From Trichosphaerium sp. ATCC 40318 (taxonomy: Eukaryota; Protista; Tubulinea), in contig JALMLS010000303.1 in the NCBI GenBank assembly GCA_038496445.1, positions 1 through 64,000 of the forward strand: a stretch of DNA of 64,000 nt. Reading direction: 5' to 3'. The position numbers and the translations under genes are program-made. The stretch's first letter is position 1. Each line of letters starts with the position of its first letter. Below, piece after piece: positions 3,406 through 64,000 of the stretch. The notes under the pieces were generated by a model. The model searched no databases and was not told the origin of the DNA. It saw only the letters and a program-made list of their open reading frames with translations.

Positions 3406-6400
3406 ATGAACATTACACCTATACTATTACTTGTTCTCGTTGCATGTGTCTACGCCCAGACCGCACGACCTCTTTTCAGGGCAAATGGAGTATCAATTAG
3501 AAACAGGCCTTTCTACTCCGTACGTTATCGTTTATTTGTTACTATGAAATCGTTCCATGTCTACAACTTTCATCGCTTTCAGCTTTTTGGTAGCTTTTTT
3601 TAGCTTGAATTAATTTCGGTTTATAGGGCGTGTTGTCTTCCACTTCTTTATATTATGATCAATCAGGCTCACAAATTCACTGGTACTCATTTTGCAAACG
3701 CTTTCAAATTCTAAATTAATTAAAAGGCGTTTTGACCACCCAACACTCGGTGCAATAGATGAAGCATACCGCTACAGCGAGGTTCGTGTTTTTAAATTCG
3801 CTTTTCGACTTTCGTGCTCGTCGGTGCACTACTTTTAGAAACATTGTTCTGAGGACTCACATCGCTATCTAGAACATTCGTTTGCGCTCCTGCCAAACTT
3901 GTGAAGCATTTGGAGAGGACAGAACTGTTCCTCGTCTATACCGTACTGGTTCCGACGCTGCTTCAGGCTCAATCACCGTTGGCGGTCAGGTGCGAAGCAA
4001 TTCTCCAGTATTTCTTTCTAACCTTGTTTTGTAGACTTGCAGTTGTTATACTGTTTCCGATACTGCAGCTGCAGGTGGCGTTAAGAAGATTTGCTCGACC
4101 TCCGCTAACTTACCTTGCTAGTACGTAGCGGTTTTTATTTGCTATTTTTCTTTTCTCGTACTAATAGCGTTCTTTAGCATTCAATTTGAACTAGTACAAG
4201 GTAATACTGACTCTGGTCAAACTGAAGGTGAAGAGTGGATATTTACCACTGACGTTACCACTGGAAACAGCGGTTGGCCTTCAGACATCTTTTTGGACGA
4301 TGTTATCGACTCTGGTGCTTGCGTAGATTCTTGCGCCCAAAAATTCGACTTGGTCCTTGCAGTTGATGATTCTGGATCTATCAACAGCAACGAATTCAGC
4401 CAAATGCAAAAGTTTTTGCTCCTTCTTATTGACTCGTTTAAAATTGGACCTGACGACGCCAATGTTGGTGTAGTATTCTACCAAACAGAAGCAAGAACCA
4501 GTCTCAGTTTGGTAGCGAATGCTTCAAGTGTTGAAAATGCAATCAAAAGTACATAAAATAGTTTTTTGGGTTTTTTATTTTTCGTATTTCTTTAACTAAC
4601 TTTATTTTAGATCCTGACCGTCAATTTGGTTCTACTTGTATTGGTTGCGGTATTGAAAACGCTGTAAAAGAGTTACGTTCTAACAGAAGACCTGGTGTTC
4701 CAGCTATTATCATGACTTTGACTGATGGTTTCAACAACCGTCCTTGTAATAAAGATAAGTGCTGTATCTTTGGTACGGAAAATTGCCACAATCGTTGTTG
4801 TCGTGGCCGCGGAGAGTACGCATACTTTTTAGACTCTCAAAACGCTAACTATATTTAGTTTCAACAGTGTTTGTTCTGGTTTGTCTGGTAATGCGCTTAC
4901 AACTTGCCAAGCCTACGGTGGTCGTGATGAACTCGAGTTCTGGACCGCTGAAGCTAGAAATGAAGACTACCGTCTTATCTCTGTTGCTATTGGTAGTTCT
5001 GTTTCCGCGCTAGATTTGGAGTTAATCTCCACCAACTATGTTCCTCCACCTGCCACAGGTGGTGATAACTACAACGCTGATAATTTCGACGCTTTGGTAG
5101 AAAGTATCAGAGAGATCCTATCTGTCGTATGCCCATCCAACAAGGCTAATGATTGCGGTGCTGACTGCGAAGGATTCTGCGGTTGTAATGGCGTTTGCGC
5201 TTGCCCAACTTGTACAGCCCCAGACATGTGCACATCCTCAGTTTGCAAACCTAATCAAGGTTTCCGCTGCAAAGAATCAGATATCAGTTCCACATGTAAC
5301 GACGGTCTTGCTTGTACCCTCAATTCTTGCAACCCAGCCAGTACGCAATATTTTTTTGTTAATGGTTATATTGACACTCTCTGCAGCTGGATGTGCTACT
5401 GTAGATGACTCTGCCAAATGCCAAACTGGCAATCCGTGCCTTGTTGATAGTTGCAGCAATGCAACTGAGTGTAATTCCGTACCAAAGGATTGCTCTGATG
5501 CCGACCCTTGTACTGTTGACTCTTGCACACCTGGAACTGGCGTTTGTGCTAATGTTCAAGTCAGCAATGCTACTTGCCGCTCTCAAGCACCTAGTTCTCA
5601 GCAAACAGCTTGTTTCAATCACTTTTGTGACTCTGACAGACAAGGTTGTGTAGCTGAACCTGTTGACTGCTCTGGAGATGATCAGTGCCTAATTTACACT
5701 TGTGATAATACTAATGGCTGTCAAACTGCACCAGTTGATTGTGACGATAACGATCCTTGCACAACCGATAGCTGTGATTCATCAGTTGGTTGCTCAAACA
5801 TAGCTATTGTTTGTGACGATAGCAGTGTATGTACTGTTGACACTTGCAACCCTACCAGTGGTACTTGTGAGTTCGAAGCACAAACCTGTACTGCATGCCA
5901 AGACGATTTTGGTGCTGATCTAAACTGCTCTGATATCCTAGCCGGTACTTTCACAAAATGCCAATTCGCTTTTTGCGATTTGAGTGGTGTTTCTACTGGT
6001 AACAGAAGCGTGAACTGCAGAGTAGAAAACAAAACTTGTGATTCGTACGTAGTTTTTCTTTTTCTTTTTTTTTTCAACTACTATCAACATATTCTTACTC
6101 TTTCCTAGTGGTAGTATGTGTATTCTTGATAGCTGCGACCTTGCTACTGGCGACTGTGTTCAAACGCCAGTTGGTTGTGATGACGGTAACGCTTGTACCA
6201 TTAATGGATGTGACGCAGCAAGTAAGTCACAATCTTAAAGATTGTCAGTCACTAATTATTTTTTTCAAGCTGGTTGTACCACCGAAGACCGCGAGTGTCT
6301 GGCGCCTAACATGTGTCAACTTGCTTCTTGCGATAACTCCACTGGTTGTGTATTTGAAGATGTAGTCTGCACTGCATCTACTCTCTGTCACATAGCGAGC

Positions 6401-7113
6401 TGTGACCCTCTTGTTGGATGTGTAGAAGAACCTAAAAACTGCACTGAATCCAGCTCTTGCTTCGATTACGCATGTAACGCAGCTGATGGTCAATGTACCA
6501 AAGAGTTCAACTGCGATGATAGCAATGCGTACGTATTTTATGCGCTTTTGTGTACGATCTCTCTAACATTTTTTACAGCTGTACTGAAGATACTTGTGTT
6601 CTCGGAAAGTGTAACTACACTGATATCTCCAGCCTTTGTGATGACGACGATGCTTGTACTATTGATACTTGCGACCCTGTCCTTCAATGTCAACACAGTA
6701 ACCTCACTTGCGAAAACTCAACCAACCTTTGCTTCCAACCGCCAGTATGCAAGTCTTTCGGTATTGATGCTGGTTGCCAACCGCCATCACGTGTGTTGTG
6801 TAGCCCTATCGATCCTTGCCACACTAGTCAGTGTTTGAACAACTCTGGTTCTTGTGAACAAAACTTTGTCGACAATGCCGCGTGCACATTTGGTGTACAA
6901 GAAACTGTCGGTGCTGCTTTGGGTGTTGGTGCTATCGTTGCCATCGTTATAGGTGTCATTGTCGCCATTGGCCTCCTCACAACTGGTTCCGTTAAGGGAT
7001 ACCAAGCTCTTGCCAACAACTACGATGGTGCTGGCGGTGCTAATGTCAATCAAACCTATGCTGGCGCTGGTAACAGCGGTACTAATCCAGCTTTCGAAAA
7101 TGCCGATCAATAA
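3406..7113 (+). CDS. Sib/integrin-beta-like type I membrane adhesion protein (signal peptide, vWA, Dictyostelium-type Cys-rich repeats, TM, NPxF tail); multi-exon
   Basis: MNITPILLLVLVACVYAQ signal; vWA with MIDAS DDSGS and TDG; many CDDxxxCTxDxC repeats; GxxxG-rich TM helix; tail NQTY...NPAF. Confidence 0.85.
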
Positions 7114-9926: not shown

Positions 9927-10169
9927 ATGGCCTTTTTACAGATAGAAGTATCAAAGCACTCGCATGTTCATACAATTTTTCTTGGATACTATAAAAATGT
10001 TACAGATGAAGGAATCAAGGCACTTTCTGGTGTTCATACAGTAACACTTTCATTGTGTGACACCATTACAAATGAAGGCATCAAAGCGCTTTCACGCATT
10101 GCTGAGATTGAAGTTAAAGACTGTAAAGGTGTTACAGAAGAAGCTGTTAACAAGACTGCCTCAGTGTAG
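9927..10169 (+). pseudogene. Truncated remnant of the VHT-type LRR family
   Basis: VTDEGIKALSGVHTVTLSLCDTITNEGIKAL matches the repeats of 23391 and 31138 but has no N-terminal domain. Confidence 0.65.
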
Positions 10170-11109
10170 AATTACATGATATGTCTCCTTAAGCAAGCAC
10201 ACTAGGATGCCTCATATACATAAAAAGTAACTTGTTTCCGGAAGAGTATATAATATAGGAATACCAATATTAGGCCAACACAAGATAAAAAATAAAAGGT
10301 ATGGCATTGAACCCTTCTTTTCTGCCTGTACATAAGTTTTTTGAACTGTGGATAAAAAAAGTTGACTTTATAATCACTGTGTTATAAGCCTTGCTGTAGT
10401 GAGGTGGAACTACAAACAACAAAATGGCTGACCATATAGACGTTGTTCAAAGATACTATTTACTTGTTTGTTTCATGTTATTTGGAGGATGTTTTGCCTT
10501 CTCGCTTCACTCTTTTTAAGAGCTCATCCAAGAAACCTAAGCTGCAATTGTTACAAAATTGCTTAGGCTACAACTTGACTTTCTACCCGCCTTTGAATCC
10601 AGTATAGCTCAGATAAACTCATTGCGGGCATGGGCTTTGAGCTTGTACACGTCTACATAAGCCAATATTATCCAACATTGACAGTATAGTCAGGTGCTGT
10701 CAAGGAAATCTGCTGCCGAATATTGATCTTCACTACATAGGATCAATAAAACAGCCTTTGCTTGTTAATACGACCTACACATACTCACAGTAAAACAACA
10801 AGCAGGTTTTAATGTTAGAGCATTGACAGGTACATACAATACGTAGCTTCTAAACACTCTGTTCTCAAATAAACTCACAACATTTACACTTGGCCTTACG
10901 TATGAAGTTGTTTTCAAGGGCGACTTGCACAATTCATAGATTTAAAGATACTGACTGTCTTCTCAAAGCCACCGATTTTGACCTTTTAGGTACCCAAGTC
11001 AAAGCCTTAATCCAACCTGACGAGCGTTCCACTTTACTAGTTATTTTTTATAGTCACGTGAATCGTTTCACCAGTCAAGCTAAGTAAGCAATTAGCAAAA
11101 TACGCAAAC

Positions 11110-14100
11110 ATGTGGAAACCATGGCTAGCTACTGCTACAGCTGTTACAGGTGGCGCCTATTTACTTTACAGCTTAACAAGGGCGAAACAAATAGTATACA
11201 GTCGAAAGCATTCTAGTTACGCCTTGAGTGAGTCGTACGACTTTATTGTCGTAGGCGCCGGTGCAGGTGGGTGTGCTGTAGCTTCCAAACTAGCAACAGC
11301 ACGAAAGTAAGTACATGACATAAAACGTGACGCCTGTAAACATGTTGTATCTTCGTTTGAGCGAAAAACTAATTTAAACGCTTGAAATTTTTTTTTGGTC
11401 TGTAAAGCCCACTGATAGCGTATATCATAGCGCCAGAATTTTGTTTTTCGAATATCATAAACGGGAAATCGTTTAAAACCGTGAACTTTTTTTTGTTTTT
11501 CATTCGGTTTTTTTCTTGACCTCAGTCACGTGTTTTTTAGGGATTCTGGTGAATTCTTTACTGTGTTACTTATCGAAGCTGGACCAGAACTTCATAATGA
11601 CAAACGTACTAAACAAGATTATAAGTATTGGACAGGGCTTTTCAATACAGGTTCGCTCTAATGAACAAGAACAGTATTTTTTATTTACATCTTTCTTTTG
11701 TTTCTTATTGTATTTTTAGATCTTGACTGGTGTTACTACTATGAACGTCAAAAGGGTTTAAACAATCGCTATATACCAGCCACTCGGTAGGTTGTTACAG
11801 AGATGGCTCTGAATTGGAGCATGCGCTTGTTGTTTGATGGTTAACTTTTTTGTTTGATAGAGGTAAGAGTACTGGTGGAAGTACGGCTGTGAATGCTTGC
11901 ATGTGGGTTCTTGGACATCAAGATGATTACGATAACTGGGAGAGACTTGGAGCTAAAGGTTGGAACTGGGAAACACTTAGACCTTATTTTAAAGCGCTAG
12001 AAGTACGAACAATCGGAACTTAAAACTGTTTTTCTTTTATCTCTTTTTTATTGCAACTTGTTTACGTTCGAGTCTTACTCTCTGATTATTATTAAGAGCT
12101 TCCCAGAAGGAGATCCTGAGTGTAGAGGCACGCGAATATATTTATAGCATCTGCTTAACATATTATTCGCTTACAAGTACAACCCTAGGTTCTGATGGTC
12201 CCATCAAAATTGCTGAGTCCGCGAAAAACACGAATATTGTTACTGATTGGGTTGAAGCTATGGGTAAGCTCGGATTAAATACTGAAGGTGACTACAACGA
12301 TGGCGAAAATAGAGGAGTTTATGTTACTCAGGTTAGCAGTGTTTAAAACTGTATACAATGATATAGTAGCTCATGCAAAGTGTAGCAAAACGTTGGTGGA
12401 AAGAAGAGAAACGACGCTTTTTCAAGTTTGATTGAGCCACTTCTTGAAAGTAAGTACCTACAACCATAATTTCTTCATGACTATCTTTGCCAAACATGCA
12501 ATGACATCGCGCATTGAAAATATGTTGGATATTCGCCTAGAGACAACAAATCGATACTGTTGTCATGTTTTTTTTGTTGTTAACATTTTTTCTTAGCGCA
12601 TTCCAATTTGACCGTTGTCAGTTGTGCTACTACCCATAGAGTATTATTTGAAGGTAAGGAAGCTACAGCTGTTCAGTTTTATTCGGATGGAAAGATGCAC
12701 ACTATTACAGCTTCGAAGGAAATCATCTTGAGTGGTGCGCCATCCACTTCTTATGAACCGACAAGAAAAACAAAGTATAATTTTTACTTAGCTGGGGCTA
12801 TTGGAAGCCCTCAAATCCTTATGCATTCAGGCATAGGAAATTCTAAAAACCTTAAAAAATATGGTGTCAAGGTCATTGTAGACAACCCAGCTGTTGGTAC
12901 GCTGAAGTTTTCTTACTTTTTTCTGTTTCTTTGGTCTTTTTTTATAAACACACATGCACAAAACATGGCTTCAACTTATTACACATTGTTGTGCTTTACA
13001 TGCACAATAAACAAAAATCGTGTCTACTCAAAGCGTGTATAATGGCAAACAGTTATTTCCTTGCTACTCTGTTTGATGTTGGTATTTTATGTTTTTGGTT
13101 CTTTTGTGGATTACTGGATATTGACACTTTGTTTTAGGTTCGAATTTCATGGATCATATTGGTGTTTCCATAGGATTGAAACTGAAAGAAGATGCACCAA
13201 CTGAAAATCTAGGTGCTGGCCTTTCTGGTACAGGATTTGGGGACTCAACATGGAGAAAAGAAAATGAAACAATTGGTGGCCCTGATATACAATATATACT
13301 CGGTGTTGGCCCTGTTCTAGAATCTTTTATGAATGCACTCTTAATAACAAAGTTCCTACCTTTTTATCCTCCAGGGACATTAACAGGTAAGCACACCTAT
13401 TCTTCTTTATGTTTTTGGCACGTGATTCTGAGTTTTTTCTTGTTCTCTTGTCGTTTACAAATTATTTTAAATGCGATGCAAGTTCTTGTGCTCCAGCGGG
13501 GCTTAAAAAGTTGAAAGATGAGCAAGGTTTTTGTTCCTTCTTGATTGTTTTATTAGGGAATCTCTTTCACTACCTCATGGGTTGCTTGAATGGTATTGGT
13601 ACGCAGTACTTTTGTTCTCTTTGGCTCATTGCTCACTTTATTTGTTTACCAAAGGCAAGGCTGGTGGCTCAATGCACAGTGAAGCAAAAAAGCTATTGAT
13701 ACTCGCAGCGTTATTAAACCATCCATCAGGTATGTATTTTGTATTATTTCTTTCGTCTTGTAAAGCAATGGCGTATACCTTTTTTTTATTGATAAAACTG
13801 TGAAGTAAGGAGTCGTGTTTTAAGGATCTTTACCAACTAAAAGCATCCGGGTAACACCTTTGTTAAGGAAAGGGATCTATGGAATTAAAGTCAAGTGACC
13901 CGACAGTTCCATTAAAGATAAACGCGAACATGGCACAAGAAGAAGGTAAAAAAAACCCCAACTCAAACTCATTCCATTTTTATTCTTACTTTCCTGCCTT
14001 TCTTTAGACATTGCCAGGCTTGTTGAAGCTTTAAAACTTCAGCTAAAAGCGTCTAAGACTGAACCACTCTCAAAGTATATTGACACAATATTGGAGCCTG

Positions 14101-15190: not shown

Positions 15191-18100
15191 CTAATCAGAT
15201 TTTGTCTCAGTCTCCTTCTTGGCTTCAGTGTTCTCTTCTACCTTTTCAATATCAACTTTTTCTGCTTTTACTTCTGGTGCAGGATCAGCTTTTTCTGCTT
15301 TTGCTTCTGGAGCAATAGAAGCACCAGCATTTGCAGATTTAAGTGCGATTTCCATCAATCTATTGATACGAGGAATCATAGGTCTGGAGTCATCCAATAG
15401 ACCAGCTTGCACGAGAGCATTATCCATAACCTATAACACAATGAGTACTTTAAGGAGACAAAAGAGAATCAAAGACGAAAGATGGAAAATAGAAGAAGAA
15501 AAGCCAAAACGATCAAAACTATTTTTTTGTTTTGTTTTGACTTTCTTCTTGTCCTCGTTTTGTTTTGAGGCTATTATGTTATTTGTTTGTTATATCCTTG
15601 CTACGTACTTGGTGGGCAACTTCTGATGCGAGATCAGCGTCTGACTTTCTGAGGCTGTTGAGGTTGGTGATGATAGGGTGACGTGGGTTAATTTGAAGTT
15701 GTTGTTTTGGTAGTTTTGGGATTCTTTGTTGATCTACCATACGCATCATACGTCTGAAAGAAGCAGATTCGTGATCAATAACAATAGCTGGTGTAGAGCT
15801 CAATCTGAATGTTTTCTAAACGAAAAAATAAGACACAAATAAAGAACAACAAAGAGACGAAGAGTCCAGGAAGCAAAAAAAAAAACAAAAAAAAACGAGT
15901 CTCCGATGAAGAAACTTGCGCTTTTTTCGTTGAGTGGGTTGACGACGGTTTAAGAGACGTACTGTTACTGTGGTGATTCTCTCATCAAGAGTATCCTTCA
16001 TCCATCTTGACAAACTCTTGAATTCTTCATCATCAAGTTCAAGGGTAGCATCTACGGTATCTTCTTTACCCTAAATCGAAAAAAACGTGTCAGCACTCAA
16101 GTTTCAATCTTGGACGAATTTCTCAACAAGATAGAGACGTACAGCTGCTTCAGCGGCTTCCTTTCCTTTAGCGCCAACATTTTGTGCAGTTTCGGCAGCA
16201 GAACCAGATTCAATAGTACTAAAGAAAACAAATCAATAAAAAATGAAAAAAAAATAAAACACGTGAAAAAAAATTAAAGAACTGTACAAACTTTTTGAGT
16301 GAGTCAGTCACTTACGCTGGTTTCATGCCCTTGTATTCGGTCAAGTTGTTCATGACAAAGTCATCCATACCAGTGTATAAGAACAATACCTATAAAACAC
16401 TATATAAGCAAACAATAGAGGTAAAAACGAACAACAAACAACAAACCAAAAAACAAAAAAAACAAAAAAAAAAATTGTCTTGTAGCTCTTACCTCAACAC
16501 CATATTCTTTAAATGTCTCAAAGTATGGTGATGACTCAGCATCAGAACGGTTAGGTACAACCAAGAAGAAGATATCTTTTTGGTCCTTCTTCATTCTGCT
16601 GACGTAAGCGTCAAGTGATGTCAATGTACCAGCAGGTTCAGCTGAACTCTCCATACGCAACAAAGCAGCCAATTCTTCCTTCCATTTAAAGTCGGTACAG
16701 ATACCTTCACGCAAGAAGTTTCCGAACTCTCCGAACCATTTAAGGTATCTCTCTTCGTTCTTCTTAGCTTCATCACCAAGGAACTTAAGAATACGTCTTG
16801 TCAATACAGAAGCAAGACGTTTAATGACAGCTGACTCTTGAATAAATTCACGAGACAAATTCAAGTCAATATCTTCGGAATCAACAACACCTTTAAAAAA
16901 CAACATTAGAATACGAATGAAACCCATTGTTGCCCATAATAATAAGAAATCATACGGACTACAAAAAACTTCGCCCAAAAGAAGAGAAAGAAGAAAAAAA
17001 AACAGCGCAAAAAACAAAGTCATAAAAAAGTCTCCGATAGTCTTGACTAACGTTCGTTTTTCGTTTGTCGTTTTGTTGACGGATTTCTTCATTAGATTAT
17101 AATGTTATGCTATGACGTACCCTTTACGAAACGTAGCCAGTCAGGCAATAGTCCCTTACACTTTTGTTGAATAAGAACCTTTCTTGAGTATAGAGATACA
17201 CCAGTCTCCATCTTACCCATACCGTATTTCTCCATATGTTGTTCTGGGAAATAAAACAATGAACGGATTTGAAGAGGTGAATCAATTTCAAAGTGGAAGT
17301 AGAATGCAGGTGTGTCGTAAGCCTATACAGACATACTTTAGTAAGAGAGAACACAATGAGATAGTTGTTTAAGCGAAAATCGTAAAAGTTTGTGAAAGGT
17401 TGAACACGTACATGAGCGATAAACTTGTAAAAGTCTTTGTGTTGCTCTTCTGTTACTTGTTTTGGGTTCATTAACCATAGAGCTTGTACAGTGTTTACTG
17501 TTTGTCCGTTTACGGTGATAGGGAATCCAACAAAGTTAGAGTACTTTTTGATAACCTCTAAAGAAAGAAAACAAAGGTAAGAACCAAGGAAGGAGAGCAA
17601 GACTGACTGAAAAAAAAAAAAGAGAAAATTCTCTTTTCTCGTTCTCTTTTGCTTTTCTTTTTTCTATCTTCTCCTTGTTGTTATTGTACTCAGTCAGTAA
17701 CGTAGATATCGACACGGCATCAATTCCGTCCGCCCGTTCGCAATGCATCATAGTACGCAGACAACAAGGAGAAGAAAGCAAAAAAAATACAAAGAAGAAG
17801 AAAAAGAGGTCATCCAAAATAACCGTATTTTTTCAAAGCCTAAAAACCATTTCGTACCTTCGACAGATTGCTTCTTTGAGAATTCAGCACAGTTTGGTCG
17901 TAGTTTTACAATAATCTTGGTACCACGTGTGACACCATCAGCTTCAGCAATTGTGTATTCTCCAGAACTAAAAAGGAACAAAGATAAGCACTCACATTAC
18001 ATTTAAACCAAAATAGGCGCGAATAAAGTTAAAAGGCAACTCATAGAAAACCGGAAGAAAATTGCAAAAAAAAAAGTTTCGGTTTGTTTTTGGAAAGAGC

Positions 18101-23390: not shown

Positions 23391-24089
23391 ATGGAAAAGG
23401 AGAAACAACAAACACAGTTCAACCAAGTATTCGACCTTGTTGCGCTACCAATTGAGTTAATAGTCCATATTCTCAAACAAGGGACGTATACACTTCGTAC
23501 AGCCCAAACGTGCCATCTTTTACGAGATATTGTTCACAACCATGTTGGGTATGGTCACATCAGTATTAAAAACACAAATGAAGTTCAAATGCTTTCTGGT
23601 AGTCCATTACTCCAGAATACGACTATTGATCTCATCCGGTGTAGCACTATAACAGATGAGTGTATGAAGGTGTTGGCAGGTGTACATAAGATTGATTTAT
23701 CAAATGCAAATGTAACAGATGAGGGTTTGAAGGTATTGGCAGGTGTGCACACTATCAACCTATGTCATTGTGAGTCAATAACAGACAATGGCATTGTGGC
23801 ATTGGCAGGTGTACATGATATTAATTTATCATTTACAAATGTAACAGATGAAGGTTTGAAGGTATTGGCAGGTGTACACACTATCAACTTGTATGCTTGT
23901 AAATCAATAACAGACAATGGCATTGCGGCATTGGCAGGTGTACATGATATTAATTTATCATATACAAATGTAACAGATGACGGTTTAAGGGTGCTAGCAG
24001 GTGTACATACCATCAGCTTGGATTACAACAGAATAGAGCTACCAGTAATTAAAATGTTGACAGGTGCATATAAAATACGGTTAGTCTAA
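23391..24089 (+). CDS. Intronless F-box-like + LRR (VHT-type) protein
   Basis: N-terminal LVALPIELIVHIL...TCHLLR; alternating 22/21-aa LAGVH repeats with a 129-bp period. Confidence 0.85.
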   Translation: MEKEKQQTQFNQVFDLVALPIELIVHILKQGTYTLRTAQTCHLLRDIVHNHVGYGHISIKNTNEVQMLSGSPLLQNTTIDLIRCSTITDECMKVLAGVHKIDLSNANVTDEGLKVLAGVHTINLCHCESITDNGIVALAGVHDINLSFTNVTDEGLKVLAGVHTINLYACKSITDNGIAALAGVHDINLSYTNVTDDGLRVLAGVHTISLDYNRIELPVIKMLTGAYKIRLV

Positions 24090-24923
24090 TAAACTGTACA
24101 TTTATCGCTTTTATCGAAAATCCATATTCGACTCTAGCATGAACATGTACAACTGTTACCTTACCAGAGGTTGCTGAAATGGGACCGGGATTGTATGTTA
24201 TATATGTCAACACTGAAGAGAACAAAACTAGTTAGGTGTCTTTCCACGGATACAAAAAATAAAATGACTTCCAAATTTCTCAATTCTCAAACAACATTGT
24301 AATACACTGCATTTTTTATTTACTAACTAGCTACTGGATTTTTATCTATTGTAGTCACGTGTTTATTATTACGAAATTACATGTAATTTCTCCAGTTGCG
24401 TCTTCTCAAACACATGCGCAGGTGAGTATTATATGAGTGCCGAATACGGGACTGTTGGACACTTGAAGCCTGGGTAATGTACCTCTGTCACCAACTAATT
24501 GGTGCGCTCGCACGCGATTTATTCAAAAAATTGTGTGCCACACGTGACTATTATCAAACCTCACAACACAGAATTTTCAAGTCCTATCTTAGGTTTGTTT
24601 ATAGCAACTTCTCCGCCATTTCTTCCCATGTGAACGTGCGACAGAGAAAGATCAACTTTAGTCTTTTTAAGCTACGCAAGCCACATGCATATATGATATA
24701 AGTGCGTAGTAGTGCACTATGCTTTCCCGTGCGATGAAGTAGTTGAGGGCAATAGACATTTATTCTGACCTCTGGGTTATTCTTTCTGCAGGTGCAATGT
24801 ATTGAAAGCGTGCAAAAACTGCTATTCAACCAAGAATCACGTGATGGAATATTGTTTGACATTACCTGAAAGCCTGGATTTTGGCACGAAATTGCTGTTC
24901 ATATTTTTAATACCAATAAAACC

Positions 24924-27900
24924 ATGGCCGAAGCACCTGGCAGAATCACTGTTGTTCCAATCGACATACCCAGTGCATGGTTTGCGAGTCGAGGCTTAAA
25001 ACCTGTTCCAAAACTATCTGTAGAGGCTAAAGTTGGTGAAGGAACACCACTATCAACAACGTATGCGCAGCAATCGGTGTCAGTTGCCAAATATTCAAAT
25101 TTTGTTGTTCGCCGACACGGGGACAAAGGTGAGGGTGAAATGTTTATCAGAGTGTCATTGACGCTTTGGCATAGTTCTTATTACAAACGGTAACGAAGCT
25201 CACAATTATGAGTTTAAACCATTCAACGACGGGCCATTTAGCGTACATATATCTCCAACACACGTGGCAGTTGCGTTAGTGCATTATGAAGTTGTCTCTA
25301 TATATGACCTGAAAAACATCAAAGCAGTTGTACGTGAGCACTATACATGCTTATTAACCTCACTTTTTTTTTTTCAGCAAACTCCTTTCTACGAAGCAGC
25401 GTTTCCAAAGCAACAGATCAAACACTTTGAGTGGGATAACAAATCTAAAATGAGGTTTGCTGTGCTTACAAATAAAGGTACAATATTTCAGTTGTATACG
25501 ATTTTGTGACACGTGGATTAGGAAACTTAACTAGCCATGAACCTTTACGAGATGATGATGGAAAACTTATCCTCTCTAATGTGTCAGCATGCACGTGAAT
25601 CACTTCTCTTAATTAAGTCTCATATATCAATAGTTACTTGGCATCATAGTATTGATACTATCGCTGTTGCACGCGAAGGTATACAAAGCACAAATTTGTA
25701 CTTTTTTACTTTCCAAATCTACCGTTTTTATAGAACCCAATTAGTCCTAACACAATCGATAGATTCTGCTGTAGAAGTGTACGCTATTTTTGATGATGGC
25801 AGCTCAAAATTGCGCACTACACACAAACCTGTAGCAGTAACGGAAAAGCCAAAATGGATTTGTTTTCCTTGTCCTACAAAATACTTTCTTGGATATCCAA
25901 GTAGTGATAACGTCAACCAAATAACCGTAGTTATGGTATATGTTATTACCAAAGTAGCATCGTCATTCTTAATTAATTCAGACCTACCGAAACCTGAATG
26001 CCTGTTCACATACATCCCAGAAAAGTAAGCTACAAAAAACCACGTGTGGTTTTTCTTTTTTTTTTCCTTTTAATGTTCAAACGTCTTATTGCTATTTAGT
26101 AAGCACTTACTTATTTATTCTTCTGCTACAAAATCGGATATGGTTCTGCATTTAATAACAGAAGTAAACCCACGATGTGTTTGGAAAATGCAGCCTGGGA
26201 TCCATGGTGTCTTCTATTTACCACAAGGAGGTTTGATTAATATCCTCTCTGGTGTTGGGAAGAAGTGTAGAGTTCGTAGAATAGAGAGTAGTTCAACTAA
26301 AAATAAGTCTGTATTTGCATGGATGGTGGAAGGCTTGACTTCAACAACAAACATTTCCACATACCATCCACTACCACAATACAGTGGTGACGGAGGTTAC
26401 GTAAGTGTTGATAGCAGAAAATTGTTTGAGGATACTTCGCAAGGATCAAGCAAAGGCTTTCAAGGTAATTCAATCAGTACCCTTACTTCCAACCGCGGGG
26501 AGATGCCTATTGAACATTTGGTTGATGTGGTTCTGGTCAACGCAAAAAAAGTATTTGAAGATAGAACGAGTCAAATCAAAGATGAGTTTATAGCTATCGC
26601 CAGGGACATCAGGTACGCCACAACATGGTTTTATTATCATAAATACATCCCCGCAGATATCTTATACTTGTTTACAGGAAAAATACTGAGCTTGAGTACA
26701 AACAAAAACATGACAAAATCATACAAGAGTTTGGAAAAAAAAACGACAGATTACAGAAAGGTGTACTGAAAGTATTTGTTTATTAACTCTTTTTAACGAT
26801 CGTTCTTTAGCCGAGGCACAGCTTGAACATCAGAAAGAATTGTTAAAAATGGAGAAACAAAAGATGGCTGTTTATAAACAACATTCTAAGGGAGGTCGGG
26901 TTGTTCTTAACGTTGGTGGCAGAAGGTGTTACTAAAAGTTGCAAATACTATCATGATTTATTGAACTAGGTTCGAGACGACAAAGTCAACACTCACTAGA
27001 TACCCGCACTCCATGCTTGGTGCTATGTTTTCTGGAAGACACGAAATTATAGATGATGGCAATGGTGTGTTTATTGATAGATCTCCAGAGCGATTTGGTA
27101 TGGTCTCCTGCTATTCCATCTTTTTTCTTACTTTGTCACATGTAGAGTTCATATTGAATTACCTCCGAGATGGTATATTGGATGTGCCTAGTACAATACG
27201 CATATCCTCTATGATACAAGAGGCTTATTACTTTGGATTAGATGACCTAGCTGAGTATTTGAGAGGAGCTAAAGGTACCTGTTTATTCACTTAAGAATGC
27301 CACATTTAAACAGTTACCTAAAAACAACAATGTCATAAAAGTGTTTTTTATTGAGTATTTGACCTCTTTGAGTAATTTGCTGCACACTTAGGCAATAACA
27401 TGGCCGGTACCAATAACAGTAACATTGATTTTGGCGGTAACAGCTCAGGTGGCTTTAATAACTCAGGAGGTAGTTTTGGCTACTTCAACAACTATAACAG
27501 TGGATGGGAAGGCAACGATAATGATGGACAAAGAGGCACAAGGGGAGCCAATTTATTAGGTGCGTAAACAAACCAACTGATTGTTAGTGATGCTCATTCG
27601 TACTTAAGTAGTGCTAAAATTTTGTCTGAAGTCATTTTTCCTTTTTTTTTTTTTCGCTGTTATTGCTTTGGTTTTCTTGTAATTTTTTATTTCAAAAAGG
27701 CACTAAATGGACAGACGGTAATCAAAAAGTAATCATGCAATCCATCTCTTTCTCACCACAATTCAATACAAAGTCTCATGAAGAACTGCGATGGCAAGAC
27801 TACCAATTACAGAAAAATGGAGGCGGTATGGGCTCTACGAGCTCTGTAGTTGGTTATACAAGCGGCTTTGGCAATACCAGTGGTTTTGGAAACTCATCAA

Positions 27901-28391
27901 GCAGTAGTAGCTTTGGAAACTCGTCTGGTATATTTGATGGCTCTTCTTTTGGTAGCTCTCGAGGATGGGGTAGCAGAACAGGTGAGCTTGTTATCCTTGC
28001 AAGTTTCTTTCTTTTACAAGTGTCTTTCTCTCTACAAAGTTATTTTGATGGAGGGACCATGTAGCACACTTGTCGTTTAGTGTCAACTAATATTTTTTTT
28101 CTGCTAGGTTTCGGTAATAATAGTAGCTCTAGTGGCTTTGGTAGCACCAGTAGTGGCTTTGGTAATACTTCTGGAAGCTTTGGAAGTAATCAAGGAACTG
28201 GCTTTGGCAGCTTATCAGGCTTCGGTGTCAGTGATAACATCAACCAGGCTGATAAAGAAAAAGAACCATCAAGTAAGGAAAAAGAGGGTGATTTTGAAGG
28301 ATGGTCGGGTTGTGATCCATTTGCAGAGATAGAAAAGAGTAAAAGAGATAACGATGAAGGCACAGGAAAGAGGAAAAGAAAGGAGATGTAG
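24924..28391 (+). CDS. Nucleoporin-like chimera: putative beta-propeller, coiled coil, KCTD-type BTB/POZ, Nup98-type GLEBS, FG repeats; multi-exon
   Basis: VVLNVGGRR-FETTKSTLTRYPHSMLGAMFSG...FIDRSPERF..ILNYLRDG (BTB); QSISFSPQFNTKSHEELRWQDYQ (GLEBS); SGFG/SSFG repeats; basic KRKRK tail. Confidence 0.75.
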
Positions 28392-28721: not shown

Positions 28722-29297
28722 TCATAAAGTATGTTGTTTGTCATTGATAAAATAGCAATGGTCCTTCAGTTGACCATTTTCAAACCAACTCTTGTATTCT
28801 CCATGTCGTACGCCATTGACAAAGTAGTATTGCTCTTCCAATTGACCATTTTTGTACCAACATTTGTATTCTCCATCTTTTTCGTCATTAACAAAGTAAC
28901 ACAACTCATTCAATACCCCGTTCTTATGCCAAACTTTAAACTCTCCATCAAATCTACCATTAATGGAATAACACAGTTCGAATAATTGACCATTGTCATA
29001 CCAACTCTTGTACACTTCTCTCTGTTCTCCATTGTCACACGAAATCACGTGTTCTCCTTCTTCTCTTTTATCATCTTTGATAATGTAGAAATGCTTATTT
29101 ATTTGTCCATTGTCATACCAATACTTGAACCCTTCTTGTTTACCATGTTTCCACTCGAACTGGCACTTTATTCTGTTCAAACAAGTTCTACGTTGCCATT
29201 TTCTGTGCTTTTTAATGTCATTATCAAATCTCGTGGTAGTTGCCGTATATTTCGATAAAACAGGCCACTTGTAATATACTTCTGAGTCTAAATCCAT
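28722..29297 (-). CDS. MORN-variant (YwqK-like) repeat protein; F-box-like segment upstream lacks an in-frame start
   Basis: GEYKxWYxNGQL repeats. The in-frame upstream sequence reads RLLHLPLELQLDIM, but a TAG precedes it with no ATG. Confidence 0.75.
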   Translation of the reverse strand: MDLDSEVYYKWPVLSKYTATTTRFDNDIKKHRKWQRRTCLNRIKCQFEWKHGKQEGFKYWYDNGQINKHFYIIKDDKREEGEHVISCDNGEQREVYKSWYDNGQLFELCYSINGRFDGEFKVWHKNGVLNELCYFVNDEKDGEYKCWYKNGQLEEQYYFVNGVRHGEYKSWFENGQLKDHCYFINDKQHTL

Positions 29298-31137: not shown

Positions 31138-32400
31138 ATGTCTACTGCTAAATACAACATGCTTCCCAGTTTCACGAATTGTAGTTCAAACCTATGCAGC
31201 ACTAGCTCTATATTCGAGCTAACTGCACTTCCCATTGAGATAATCGTCCATATCTTAAAACGTGGGATAATTACAATCCCTACAGCTCAAACATGTCGTT
31301 TATTACGAGATATAGTCCATAATCATGTTGGATACAATGAACTAATTATTAACAGCACAACCATGTTGTCAATGCTCGCTGCCAGCCCTATTCTTCGAAA
31401 TACACGAATTGATTTGAAAGGCATTCGAAGAACTCTGACAGATAGTCACTTACGCCTACTTTCAGGTGTTCACACTATTGACATAAATTGTTGTAGGAAT
31501 ATAACAGATAAGGGTATCAAAGTGTTGTTAGGAGTACATGAGATTGATTTATCAAATACAAGGGTAACAGATGAAGGTTTGAAGGCATTGGCAGGTGTAC
31601 ACACTATAAGTCTTAGATGGTGCAAAGGAATTACAGATAAGGGCATCAAGGCATTGGTAGGCGTACATCACATTGATTTAGGATACACAAAAGTTACATC
31701 TGAATGTGTTAAGGCATTTGCAGGCATACCTAACATCAGCTTGGAGTATTGTGATATAGCAGATGATTGCTTAAAGGCATTAGCAGGCGTTCACACAATA
31801 AATTTGAGTCAGTGTTCATATATAACAGATGAAGGCATCTCAGCATTGGCTGGTGTACATTACATTGATTTATCTTACACAAATGTACAAGATGCAGGTT
31901 TGAAGGCGTTGGCTGGTGTACACACAATCAACTTGGATAGTTGTGAGTCAATAACAGACTCAGGTATCAAAGCGTTGGCTGGTGCACATGGCATTGATTT
32001 ATCGGCTACGAATGTGACAGATGAAGGTTTAAAGGAATTGTTTGGTGTACATACCATCGTATTAGATAGTTGTATTAGAATAACAGACATGGGCATCCAC
32101 AAGTTGGCAGGTGTACACACTATCAACCTCAATTTTTGTGGTCAACTAACGGACTTGGGCTTCAAAGCATTGGCTGGTGCACATGACATAGATTTATCTT
32201 ATACAAAAGTGACTGATGAAGGTATCAAGGCATTATCTGGAGCTCACAGAATCAGTTTGTTTCATTGTAAAGAAATAACAGATGAGGGCGCTATAGCATT
32301 GGCAGGTGTACACGAAATCGATTTGAGACATGCAAACATAACAGTTGGTACTGTGGAGACATTACTTGATAGAGTACACACTGTTAAATACTCTAAGTAG
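31138..32400 (+). CDS. Intronless F-box-like + LRR (VHT-type) protein, 420 aa
   Basis: LTALPIEIIVHIL...TCRLLRDIVHNHVGY, shared with 23391; about 14 LAGVH-type repeats. Confidence 0.88.
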   Translation: MSTAKYNMLPSFTNCSSNLCSTSSIFELTALPIEIIVHILKRGIITIPTAQTCRLLRDIVHNHVGYNELIINSTTMLSMLAASPILRNTRIDLKGIRRTLTDSHLRLLSGVHTIDINCCRNITDKGIKVLLGVHEIDLSNTRVTDEGLKALAGVHTISLRWCKGITDKGIKALVGVHHIDLGYTKVTSECVKAFAGIPNISLEYCDIADDCLKALAGVHTINLSQCSYITDEGISALAGVHYIDLSYTNVQDAGLKALAGVHTINLDSCESITDSGIKALAGAHGIDLSATNVTDEGLKELFGVHTIVLDSCIRITDMGIHKLAGVHTINLNFCGQLTDLGFKALAGAHDIDLSYTKVTDEGIKALSGAHRISLFHCKEITDEGAIALAGVHEIDLRHANITVGTVETLLDRVHTVKYSK

Positions 32401-54936: not shown

Positions 54937-55704
54937 TCAAGAAATAGTGCACCCTTGTTTTTCTTGTTCTATCCCTTTGATATAAGTGCTAAATTTAAGC
55001 AATTGACCTCGTGAATTCCACTTCTTGTACTCTCCATCAATTATACCATTCACTACATTAAACTGTTGATTTAATTGGCCGTTTTCAAACCAGTGGTTGA
55101 TCTGACCTTCTCCTTTACCCTTAATATATCTGCCTGCCTGAAATAGCTGACCATGTACATACCAAATCTTGTACTCTCCATCTCGTAAACCATTTACATA
55201 GTGATATTGCCTCCGCAATTGCCCATTTTCATACCAATGCATTTCCTCTTTGTCTAGCTTACCACGTGTATAATAACCTTTCTTACATAATTGTCCAGAG
55301 TAATACCAAACCTTAAACTCTCCCTCTCTTCTCCCGTTGATGTAATGCAACTGCTTGTTTAATTGAGCGTTGCTATACCAGTACTCACACTCACCTTCTC
55401 GTTCTCCATTTAGACAGCTATACTTTTCGCACATCTGTCCATTGTCATACCAACCCACGTGCTCGGATAGATAACCATTTTTCCAGTAATCTTGCACTGT
55501 AATTGCTGGTTTTGAGCGATTACATTCTTGTTTAATCCATTTGCCATGTTTCCGTAACTTAGAGTCAAACCTCGTAGTTGTTGCCGCTTGTAGAGATAAA
55601 AGAGGGTATTTTAAGTAAACTTCAAAGTCCAGCTCTATCATAATATACTGCAGCTCTAATGGGAGCTGTAATATAAGACAACTACCAAATTTTGAAGTAT
55701 TCAT
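54937..55704 (-). CDS. Intronless F-box-like + MORN-variant repeat protein
   Basis: MNTSKFGSCLILQLPLELQYIMI, then about 7 GExxxWYxNGQL repeats; paralog of 28722. Confidence 0.82.
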   Translation of the reverse strand: MNTSKFGSCLILQLPLELQYIMIELDFEVYLKYPLLSLQAATTTRFDSKLRKHGKWIKQECNRSKPAITVQDYWKNGYLSEHVGWYDNGQMCEKYSCLNGEREGECEYWYSNAQLNKQLHYINGRREGEFKVWYYSGQLCKKGYYTRGKLDKEEMHWYENGQLRRQYHYVNGLRDGEYKIWYVHGQLFQAGRYIKGKGEGQINHWFENGQLNQQFNVVNGIIDGEYKKWNSRGQLLKFSTYIKGIEQEKQGCTIS

Positions 55705-55922
55705 CTTGTCTTGTGTAGTGAACTGAACAGACGTTAAGGTTGTTAAGACAATGTCGCTGTAGAGGTTCGTTGGTTGTTGATATTTAGGTTTTACGGTGAT
55801 CACGTGTTTCTCTAAAGTTTTAGAAAGAAAAAACCGAGTTTGACTCTTAGATTAAGTTGTAGCTATTTATTCTTCTCAAAGGTTACGCTTGAAAGAACAC
55901 GCTGCGGCAACATCAGCAAAGC

Positions 55923-63784: not shown

Positions 63785-64000
63785 ATGGAAAAGGAGAAAC
63801 AACAAACACAGTTCAACCAAGTATTCGACCTTGTTGCGCTACCAATTGAGTTAATAGTCCATATTCTCAAACAAGGGACGTATACACTTCGTACAGCCCA
63901 AACGTGCCATCTTTTACGAGATATTGTTCACAACCATGTTGGGTATGGCCGTATCCGTATTAAAAACACAAATGAAGTTCAGATGCTTTCTGGTAGTCCA
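63785..64000 (+). CDS. F-box-like + LRR protein, near-identical copy of 23391 (runs off the window)
   Basis: MEKEKQQTQFNQVFDLVALPIELIVHILKQG; nucleotide identity with 23367 onward starts at 63761. Confidence 0.88.
   Translation, partial: MEKEKQQTQFNQVFDLVALPIELIVHILKQGTYTLRTAQTCHLLRDIVHNHVGYGRIRIKNTNEVQMLSGSP

Follow-up and report, generated by a model that had tools for sequence, protein, structure and literature searches.

A GLEBS motif accompanied by FG (Phe-Gly) repeats is the signature of the nucleoporin Nup98, and a KCTD-type BTB domain is the signature of oligomeric Cul3 adaptors. We analyzed a predicted gene in which the two appear to be joined: it is located on the plus strand, at positions 24924-28391, of a stretch of 64,000 nucleotides from Trichosphaerium sp. 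ATCC 40318 (contig JALMLS010000303.1, positions 1 to 64,000), hereafter the window. The interaction of GLEBS with Rae1 is established for Nup98 (excerpt of PMC2133102), and docking by a portable GLEBS has been reported outside nucleoporins, for Bub1/BubR1 with Bub3 and for NuMA with Rae1 (PMC5749825; excerpt of PMC2172680). KCTD BTB domains are found as monomers, tetramers or pentamers; for most of them the assembly with Cul3 is 5:5, and certain members are non-binders (PMC5664961). In the KCTD7-Cul3 complex solved by cryo-electron microscopy, the residues contacting Cul3 are M76, R84, H85 and Y131, and the position of M76 is occupied by M or F in Cul3 binders and by K, R, T or L in non-binders (PMC10348674). 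KCTD5 and KCTD12 present a WD40 propeller (G-beta) to the pentameric BTB (PMC10348674).

The locus described here suggests a joining of these two known kinds of protein, a KCTD adaptor and a Nup98-type FG/GLEBS protein, and it is this joining that would be new. The presence of both in one polypeptide would suggest a direct physical link from ubiquitin ligation, or at least from BTB oligomerisation, to Rae1, a factor of mRNA export and of the mitotic checkpoint. The order of elements in the predicted protein would be: an orphan beta-rich region, a K/E/Q-rich helical linker, the KCTD/T1 BTB, an FG-GLEBS-FG region, and an acidic/basic tail ending in KRKRK.

Exon chain and conserved domains

The gene model was built by chaining stop-free stretches of the plus strand that lie in changing frames. 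It comprises 13 exons which form one frame of 2586 nt, i.e. 861 codons, from an ATG at 24924 to a TAG at 28389-28391. The 12 introns are all of the GT-AG type, range from 44 to 140 nt and have phases that agree throughout; the window as a whole has a eukaryotic character (GC content of about 37%, short GT-AG introns). Codon usage was scored with a log-likelihood trained on six other coding stretches within the window: the score is positive for every exon in the proposed frame and lower in the two other frames. Introns are GC-poorer (0.27-0.43) than exons (0.40). A previous reading of this DNA, made from the sequence only, had proposed that the exons join into one open reading frame, and the consistent phases and coding-type codon usage agree with this proposal. 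All searches, folds and look-ups reported below were run per exon or per stop-free stretch. The features of the gene are as follows.

24924-25128 (+): exon 1, start codon at 24924, ends in phase 1; codon log-likelihood +0.16 against -0.35 and -0.34 out of frame; no Pfam family
25175-25329 (+): exon 2, orphan N-terminal region, from the exon model and codon statistics
25378-25477 (+): exon 3, holds HFEWD and FAVLTNK, from the exon model and codon statistics
25522-25678 (+): exon 4 region, internal structure ambiguous, with three splice options
25745-26024 (+): exon 5, orphan N-terminal region; no Pfam family
26100-26612 (+): exon 6 (170 residues), end of the putative beta-rich region, low-complexity linker and, from about 26509, a K/E-rich start of the predicted helical part
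26678-26760 and 26811-26896 (+): exon 7 and first part of exon 8, proline-free K/E/Q-rich helical linker, possibly a short coiled coil
26897-27274 (+): KCTD/T1-type BTB, formed by the end of exon 8 (RVVLNVGGR), exon 9 (26970-27097) and exon 10 (27146-27274)
27275-27391 (+): intron 10, donor AAG/GTACCT, acceptor CACACTTAG/G (splice points marked by slashes); the fusion depends on this junction
27392-27534 (+): first part of exon 11, short N/G/S-rich FG block with FG at 27424-27435 and 27469-27480
27535-27806 (+): Nup98-type GLEBS, split between the last part of exon 11 (27535-27559, GTRGANLL) and exon 12 (27700-27806, up to QSISFSPQFNTKSHEELRWQDYQ)
27560-27699 (+): intron 11, which interrupts the GLEBS motif
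27861-28226 (+): main FG block with ten FG, interrupted by intron 12; exon 12 contributes the part up to 27981 and exon 13 the part from 28108
28227-28391 (+): charged C-terminal tail with KRKRK at 28368-28382 and TAG at 28389-28391; no Pfam family

The BTB is recognized by Pfam BTB_2 (PF02214) on two consecutive exons, both above the cut-off of 21.4 bits: exon 9 scores 31.7 bits (E 2e-7, profile positions 10-53) and exon 10 scores 22.5 bits (E 1.5e-4, profile positions 56-89). The domain starts with the strand RVVLNVGGR, encoded by the last part of exon 8. Since the match to the profile runs on across two introns, it is evidence for the corresponding splices. The best relatives of the BTB exons in the PDB are KCTD7 (8i79_F, E 8e-6) and KCTD9 (5bxh, E 1e-4), and further matches concern KCTD10, KCTD13, SHKBP1 and KCTD1, so that the KCTD-type BTB noticed in the sequence-only reading is well founded. 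In the HMMER alignment with 8i79_F, Met15, Arg23 and His24 of exon 9 face M76, R84 and H85 of KCTD7; in exon 10, the second Tyr of EAYYF is found at the position of Y131, in a motif E-A-x-Ar-Ar (Ar, aromatic). All four Cul3-contact residues of KCTD7 are thus kept at the level of sequence, and the BTB looks competent for Cul3 binding. This lends some support, at that same level, to the earlier idea of a coupling to Cul3.

The GLEBS motif was examined in several ways. Exon 12 alone matches Pfam Nup98_GLEBS (PF21240) with an E value of 0.0017 and 18.8 bits (profile positions 18-39), and its top three matches in the PDB, with E values of about 1.6, are Nup98 GLEBS peptides from Rae1 complexes. A metagenome collection was scanned with the degenerate pattern K-S-x-E-E-L-R-x-x-D-Y-Q, which gave at least 120 loci; nearly all of those listed are true Nup98 GLEBS in FG-rich open reading frames of many eukaryotes. 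Their consensus is xSISAMPxYxxKSHEELRWEDYQ, and QSISFSPQFNTKSHEELRWQDYQ of the window fits it closely. The best locus among those listed carries QSISLMPQYNTKSHEELRWEDYQ (tblastn E 2.7e-13). It belongs to an ENA contig (ERZ1740070 NODE-140050, 1104 nt, GC 51%) that bears a fragment of an intron-containing FG-rich gene and is too short to reveal the rest of it.

Because these loci had been selected by the pattern, three checks that do not depend on it were added. With a hidden Markov model restricted to the 25 residues that precede the pattern, this open reading frame comes first among the 1566 six-frame segments of the window, in register, with an E value of 0.037. In a BLASTP comparison with NUP98 of Panicum hallii, a protein for which Nup98_GLEBS and PF04096 (autopeptidase) are the precomputed Pfam domains, the identity is 51% over 39 residues (pairwise E 2e-10). 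Finally, an anchor of the form G[ST][RK] is present 29-38 residues before the K of the pattern in 42 of 70 relatives; here a GTR encoded in the last part of exon 11 precedes the K by 29 residues, which supports the splice between exons 11 and 12. The string on which the earlier assignment of a Nup98-type GLEBS relied is present in the gene model, and the grass NUP98 and the environmental relatives both uphold that assignment.

The GLEBS is flanked by 12 FG dipeptides, two before and ten after it. They are all of the SxFG/GFG types (GLFG: none of the 12), their spacers are uncharged and composed of S, G, N and T, and the background in open reading frames of the window is 0.3 FG per 100 residues. 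The protein ends with GKRKRKEM, in which KRKRK (28368-28382) resembles a nuclear localisation signal. No Pfam match to the Nup98 autoprotease domain (PF04096) was found on any exon; the reading frame stops at 28391, and a convergent MORN gene begins 331 nt further on. The SxFG repeats, the basic end and the lack of an autoprotease domain had all been described correctly from the letters of this DNA.

Three introns, 25330-25377 (48 nt), 25679-25744 (66 nt) and 27098-27145 (48 nt), have lengths that are multiples of three and contain no in-frame stop. Their retention keeps the frame, and in the case of 27098-27145 it would insert 16 residues within the BTB.

Comparison with described architectures

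The co-occurrence of a BTB and a GLEBS was searched for in sequence collections and in the literature. No match was found when the BTB exons and the N-terminal exons were compared by tblastn (E <= 1) with the GLEBS loci, at least 120 in number, short BTB queries being insensitive in such a search. A word search with a plant Nup98 open reading frame, scored on GLEBS and covering proteins of 438-1395 residues, returned 412 proteins; the best 120 of these 412, all from plants, contain either GLEBS with the autoprotease domain or GLEBS alone, and none of them contains a BTB. In the literature we found no description of a BTB-GLEBS protein, nor of a KCTD protein combined with a nucleoporin FG protein. 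The architecture was not recognized by the sequence-only reading either, and these searches agree with it. Two plant proteins show unusual arrangements: a protein of Impatiens glandulifera (P0038) has six tandem GLEBS, and one of Macleaya cordata (P0039) has three GLEBS and a C3HC4 RING finger, both without autoprotease domain. Each could be a genuine variant or a product of merging gene models, and GLEBS proteins outside the canonical layout do in any case occur in annotations. They resemble the present protein in that GLEBS is multiplied or associated with a domain of E3-ligase type in the absence of an autoprotease, and they differ from it in that the domain is a RING and not a BTB (P0039) and in that the rest of the sequence is unrelated.

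The closest described proteins on the nucleoporin side are Nup98, Nup116 and Nup145N. The common points are a GLEBS of the widespread consensus, the upstream GTR anchor, and FG repeats with uncharged spacers on both sides. The differences are that the present protein lacks PF04096, which anchors these proteins to the nuclear pore complex, as well as the Nup96 part and GLFG, that it has only 12 FG, and that its FG/GLEBS region is C-terminal, behind about 640 residues of unrelated domains including the BTB. Nup214/Nup159 and Nup88/Nup82 have a loosely similar order (beta-rich region, helical stretch, FG), but they contain neither BTB nor GLEBS and no sequence similarity to them was detected. With Bub1/BubR1 and NuMA the protein shares a GLEBS as portable dock for a WD40 propeller of the Rae1/Bub3 type; their motifs lie outside FG repeats, whereas the motif studied here is nearest to the Nup98 type. 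A last comparison concerns the oncogenic fusions of NUP98, in which FG/GLEBS is cut off from the autoprotease domain and attached instead to a different module, functional or oligomerising (excerpts of PMC11423334 and PMC2725295). These fusions are somatic with FG/GLEBS at the N-terminus, whereas we are dealing with a germline gene with FG/GLEBS at the C-terminus.

On the adaptor side, KCTD7, KCTD9, KCTD10/13, SHKBP1 and KCTD5 likewise have a BTB_2/T1-type BTB without 3-box, followed by a partner-binding region (putative in the present case), and the KCTD7 residues M76, R84, H85 and Y131 have their equivalents in this protein. The KCTD layout, with an N-terminal BTB and a small folded C-terminal domain, is not matched: the BTB is central, starting at about residue 545 of 861, after an orphan domain and a helical linker, and a disordered FG/GLEBS tail replaces the folded C-terminal domain.

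Possible function and alternative readings

We tentatively put forward the following reading, which we regard as possible rather than probable: one lineage-restricted gene would encode a protein of about 861 residues which, rather than replacing Nup98, would serve Rae1 at the transport machinery as an adaptor or scaffold that is multivalent and linked to Cul3. The BTB would oligomerise the protein into a tetramer or pentamer, as KCTD BTBs do, and would probably recruit Cul3, since the Cullin-3-contact residues of KCTD7 are kept. The GLEBS/FG tail would take the place of the substrate-binding C-terminal domain of KCTD proteins: with one Rae1/Gle2 WD40 propeller docked per GLEBS hairpin, the assembly would be directed to the FG network, at the pore or in the nucleus, by the uncharged FG repeats together with the basic tail. 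The outcome would be either the ubiquitylation of Rae1 or of its cargo, or mere multivalent scaffolding. If the fusion is real, it offers a testable candidate route for Rae1 ubiquitylation and a natural counterpart of the NUP98 fusion proteins with foreign oligomerising domains, and it would be an example of an amoeba-like protist lineage, so far poorly sampled, that put parts of the nuclear pore to new use through exon shuffling.

Several points weigh against this adaptor reading. The join between exons 10 and 11 is predicted from splice signals; if intron 10 is left unspliced, a stop is reached at 27292-27294, six codons past the donor of exon 10, and an ATG at 27400 in a Kozak-like context (A at -3, G at +4) is a possible start for an FG-GLEBS protein. 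The Pfam score of the GLEBS is under the 27-bit cut-off on the exon piece, and docking on Rae1 is predicted from conserved residues. Cul3 binding and the oligomeric state are likewise predicted from a few conserved residues, and KCTD1, which does not bind Cul3, is also among the PDB matches of the BTB exons. Twelve FG are few for a barrier-forming FG domain. Finally, exon-wise searches found no relative, of the whole protein or of the N-terminal exon 6, that would point to a conserved fusion.

A stronger version of the adaptor reading makes the protein a true receptor of a Cul3-RING ligase, with the nucleoporin-derived GLEBS as recruiter: gathered on the pentameric BTB, as many as five Rae1 propellers, or cargo bound to Rae1, would be kept at the FG network in order to be ubiquitylated. 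We consider this version doubtful. If it is correct, the gene is a "Rosetta-stone" fusion pointing to a link between KCTD-Cul3 and Rae1 in other eukaryotes. RAE1 is ubiquitylated, its E3 ligase not being known in animals, and KCTD6 and RAE1 are both in the USP11 interactome, KCTD6 co-purifying with USP11 as RAE1 does (PMC5749825); these observations make the fusion a useful lead.

The BTB may also be a simple oligomerisation module in a single gene, without Cul3. In that case the product would be the scaffold of a nuclear condensate, or an accessory FG nucleoporin specific to the lineage. It would be anchored by its N-terminal domain and linker, and its cohesive, Nup98-like FG/GLEBS tail, binding Rae1 and transport receptors, would gain valency through the oligomer; such a protein would be a natural counterpart of the NUP98 fusions that join FG/GLEBS to an oligomerising partner. 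The FG-GLEBS-FG order with uncharged spacers is that of Nup98, the basic tail resembles a nuclear localisation signal, and the FG domains of Nup98 are cohesive across eukaryotes, amoebae included (excerpt of PMC4283134). The variety of oligomeric states of KCTD BTBs, some of them not binding Cul3 (PMC5664961), points in the same direction. This explanation is nevertheless rather unlikely: the four described Cul3-contact residues are all kept, FG repeats are limited to 12 with no GLFG type, and no Nup-like anchoring domain was recognized in the N-terminus by Pfam, PDB, HMMER or AlphaFold (AF2) applied per exon.

The adaptor reading and its version without Cul3 both suppose that the BTB and the FG/GLEBS exons are on one transcript. 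On splice-site logic, exons 10 and 11 are probably on the same transcript. The rival explanation, which we judge unlikely, is that two (or three) adjacent genes were wrongly joined: an orphan/BTB protein ending at 27292-27294, and a small stand-alone protein of about 245 residues, with FG-GLEBS-FG and the putative nuclear localisation signal, starting from the ATG at 27400; the BTB part could likewise begin at an internal Met in exon 8. If so, we would be looking at an ordinary BTB gene beside a small Nup98-like gene. The proximity of the stop to the donor and the good context of the ATG agree with such a division, and canonical Nup98 proteins also start directly with FG repeats. Intron 10 has a GC content of 0.31 and no coding signal in any frame. 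Only 8 nt of exon 11 precede the ATG, too few for coding statistics to choose between the models. Four observations favour a single gene. First, the donor AAG/GTACCT is placed exactly at the end of the BTB, is compatible in phase and fits the local consensus (AAG/GT in 6 of 12 donors, GTAC in 4 of 12). Second, AAGGTA is rare: with 36 copies per strand in 64 kb, a chance copy at 30 nt or less from the stop is expected in about 2% of cases, and in the right phase in about 0.6%. Third, the gap between the stop and the ATG is 105 nt, compared to 380-835 nt between neighbouring genes on the same strand (331-835 nt over the other gaps), and it would have to house both a 3' end and a promoter; with a division at exons 7/8 the gap is only about 60 nt. 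Fourth, the word search detected no stand-alone FG-GLEBS homologue of 79-252 residues, the length range that it covered. The hexamer CACGTG was considered as a promoter mark in this question and was not used, its sites not being consistently tied to gene starts.

Very improbable, in our opinion, is a young or decaying chimera without selected function, produced by exon shuffling, for instance by insertion, behind a BTB gene, of a segment copied from the 5' portion of its own Nup98 gene. The three 3' introns (27275-27391, 27560-27699 and 27982-28107) are all in phase 1, which makes exons 11 and 12 symmetric (1-1), and with 117-140 nt they are 2-3 times longer than the nine 5' introns (44-75 nt): symmetric phase-1, longer introns around the FG/GLEBS exons are the pattern expected if a Nup98-like module came by exon shuffling. 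Exon-wise searches found no orthologue, as such a chimera would predict. An absence of selected function is difficult to reconcile with a frame intact over 861 codons, coding-like codon usage in all exons, and well kept GLEBS core and Cul3-contact residues. A viral or giant-virus origin was rejected in view of the 12 spliceosomal introns and of the lack of viral relatives in the scans with exons 6 and 12.

N-terminal half and surroundings of the gene

The region preceding the BTB is probably composed of an orphan, beta-rich domain of about 430-480 residues and a helical linker. Exons 1-6 have no match in Pfam or in the PDB, the PDB search with exon 6 returning noise. No true relative of exon 6 (170 residues) was found by HMMER among 1.84 billion representatives; the sole match, a bacterial PKD-repeat protein, was rejected as spurious, being matched on composition. 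Scans of the metagenome and viral collections with exon 6, and of the viral collection with exon 12, gave no related loci. AlphaFold (AF2) applied to exon 6 alone gives a pLDDT of 38, and the strands predicted at residues 3-88 are a hint only. The sequence-only reading had seen a propeller here; with no family match for exons 1-6 and this low pLDDT, the propeller is at most putative. It had also seen a coiled coil: the stretch before the BTB is indeed proline-free and rich in E/K/Q/R/L/A/M (59-78%), but its heptad contrast is not significant, being reached by 125 and 882 of 2000 shuffles. The resemblance to the layout of Nup214/159, which depends on the propeller and the coiled coil, is likewise putative.

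The exon 4 region admits three splice options, all of which preserve the frame: a single exon 25535-25678 (log-likelihood 0.12); two exons, 25522-25580 and 25618-25678, separated by a GT-AG intron of 37 nt (0.71 and 0.37); and a GC-AG intron 25591-25633, which the VSAFTWH string quoted in the sequence-only reading needs. That string thus competes with two GT-AG alternatives, and codon statistics favour the split version. About 20-45 residues are uncertain in sequence in this area.

The neighbourhood was also described as an F-box cluster. Single-exon paralogues combining an F-box and leucine-rich repeats (LRR_6), with 51-62% mutual identity, are indeed found on both sides of the gene (9948-10172, 23391-24089, 31138-32400 and 63815-64000, the last cut by the window end), but the cluster is loose: these genes and two MORN_2 paralogues that are 42% identical (28722-29297 and 54937-55803, both on the minus strand) lie scattered between intron-rich genes. 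Outside the window, the flanking F-box genes have their best relatives, at about 40% identity, in marine protist transcripts (MMETSP; Clydonella sp. and Trichosphaerium, both Amoebozoa), followed by bacterial leucine-rich repeat proteins. Exact look-ups in the public assemblies gave no record for three single-exon proteins of the neighbourhood. Other genes of the window include a Cys-rich gene at about 4560-7113 (+) that encodes Dictyostelium-type CTDC repeats (Pfam Dicty_CTDC, E 2e-15) as well as a hydrophobic segment at the C-terminus, in keeping with a likely amoebozoan-like origin, and two ordinary intron-bearing housekeeping neighbours: exons of an HSP90-family gene at 16400-17600 (-) (Pfam HSP90, E 5e-36) and exons of a GMC oxidoreductase gene at 12608-13042 (+) (E 2e-6).

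The hexamer CACGTG is the most over-represented one in the window. It has 66 sites compared to 10.0 +/- 3.1 expected from dinucleotide shuffles (maximum 17), i.e. 8.6 times the mononucleotide expectation, the next palindrome reaching 2.6 times. No longer repeat unit surrounds the sites, and none is located between 26047 and 29045. Their median spacing is 715 nt, and they are found in exons, introns and intergenic DNA, for example at 24356, 24541, 24838, 25261, 25510, 25592, 26041 and 31080.

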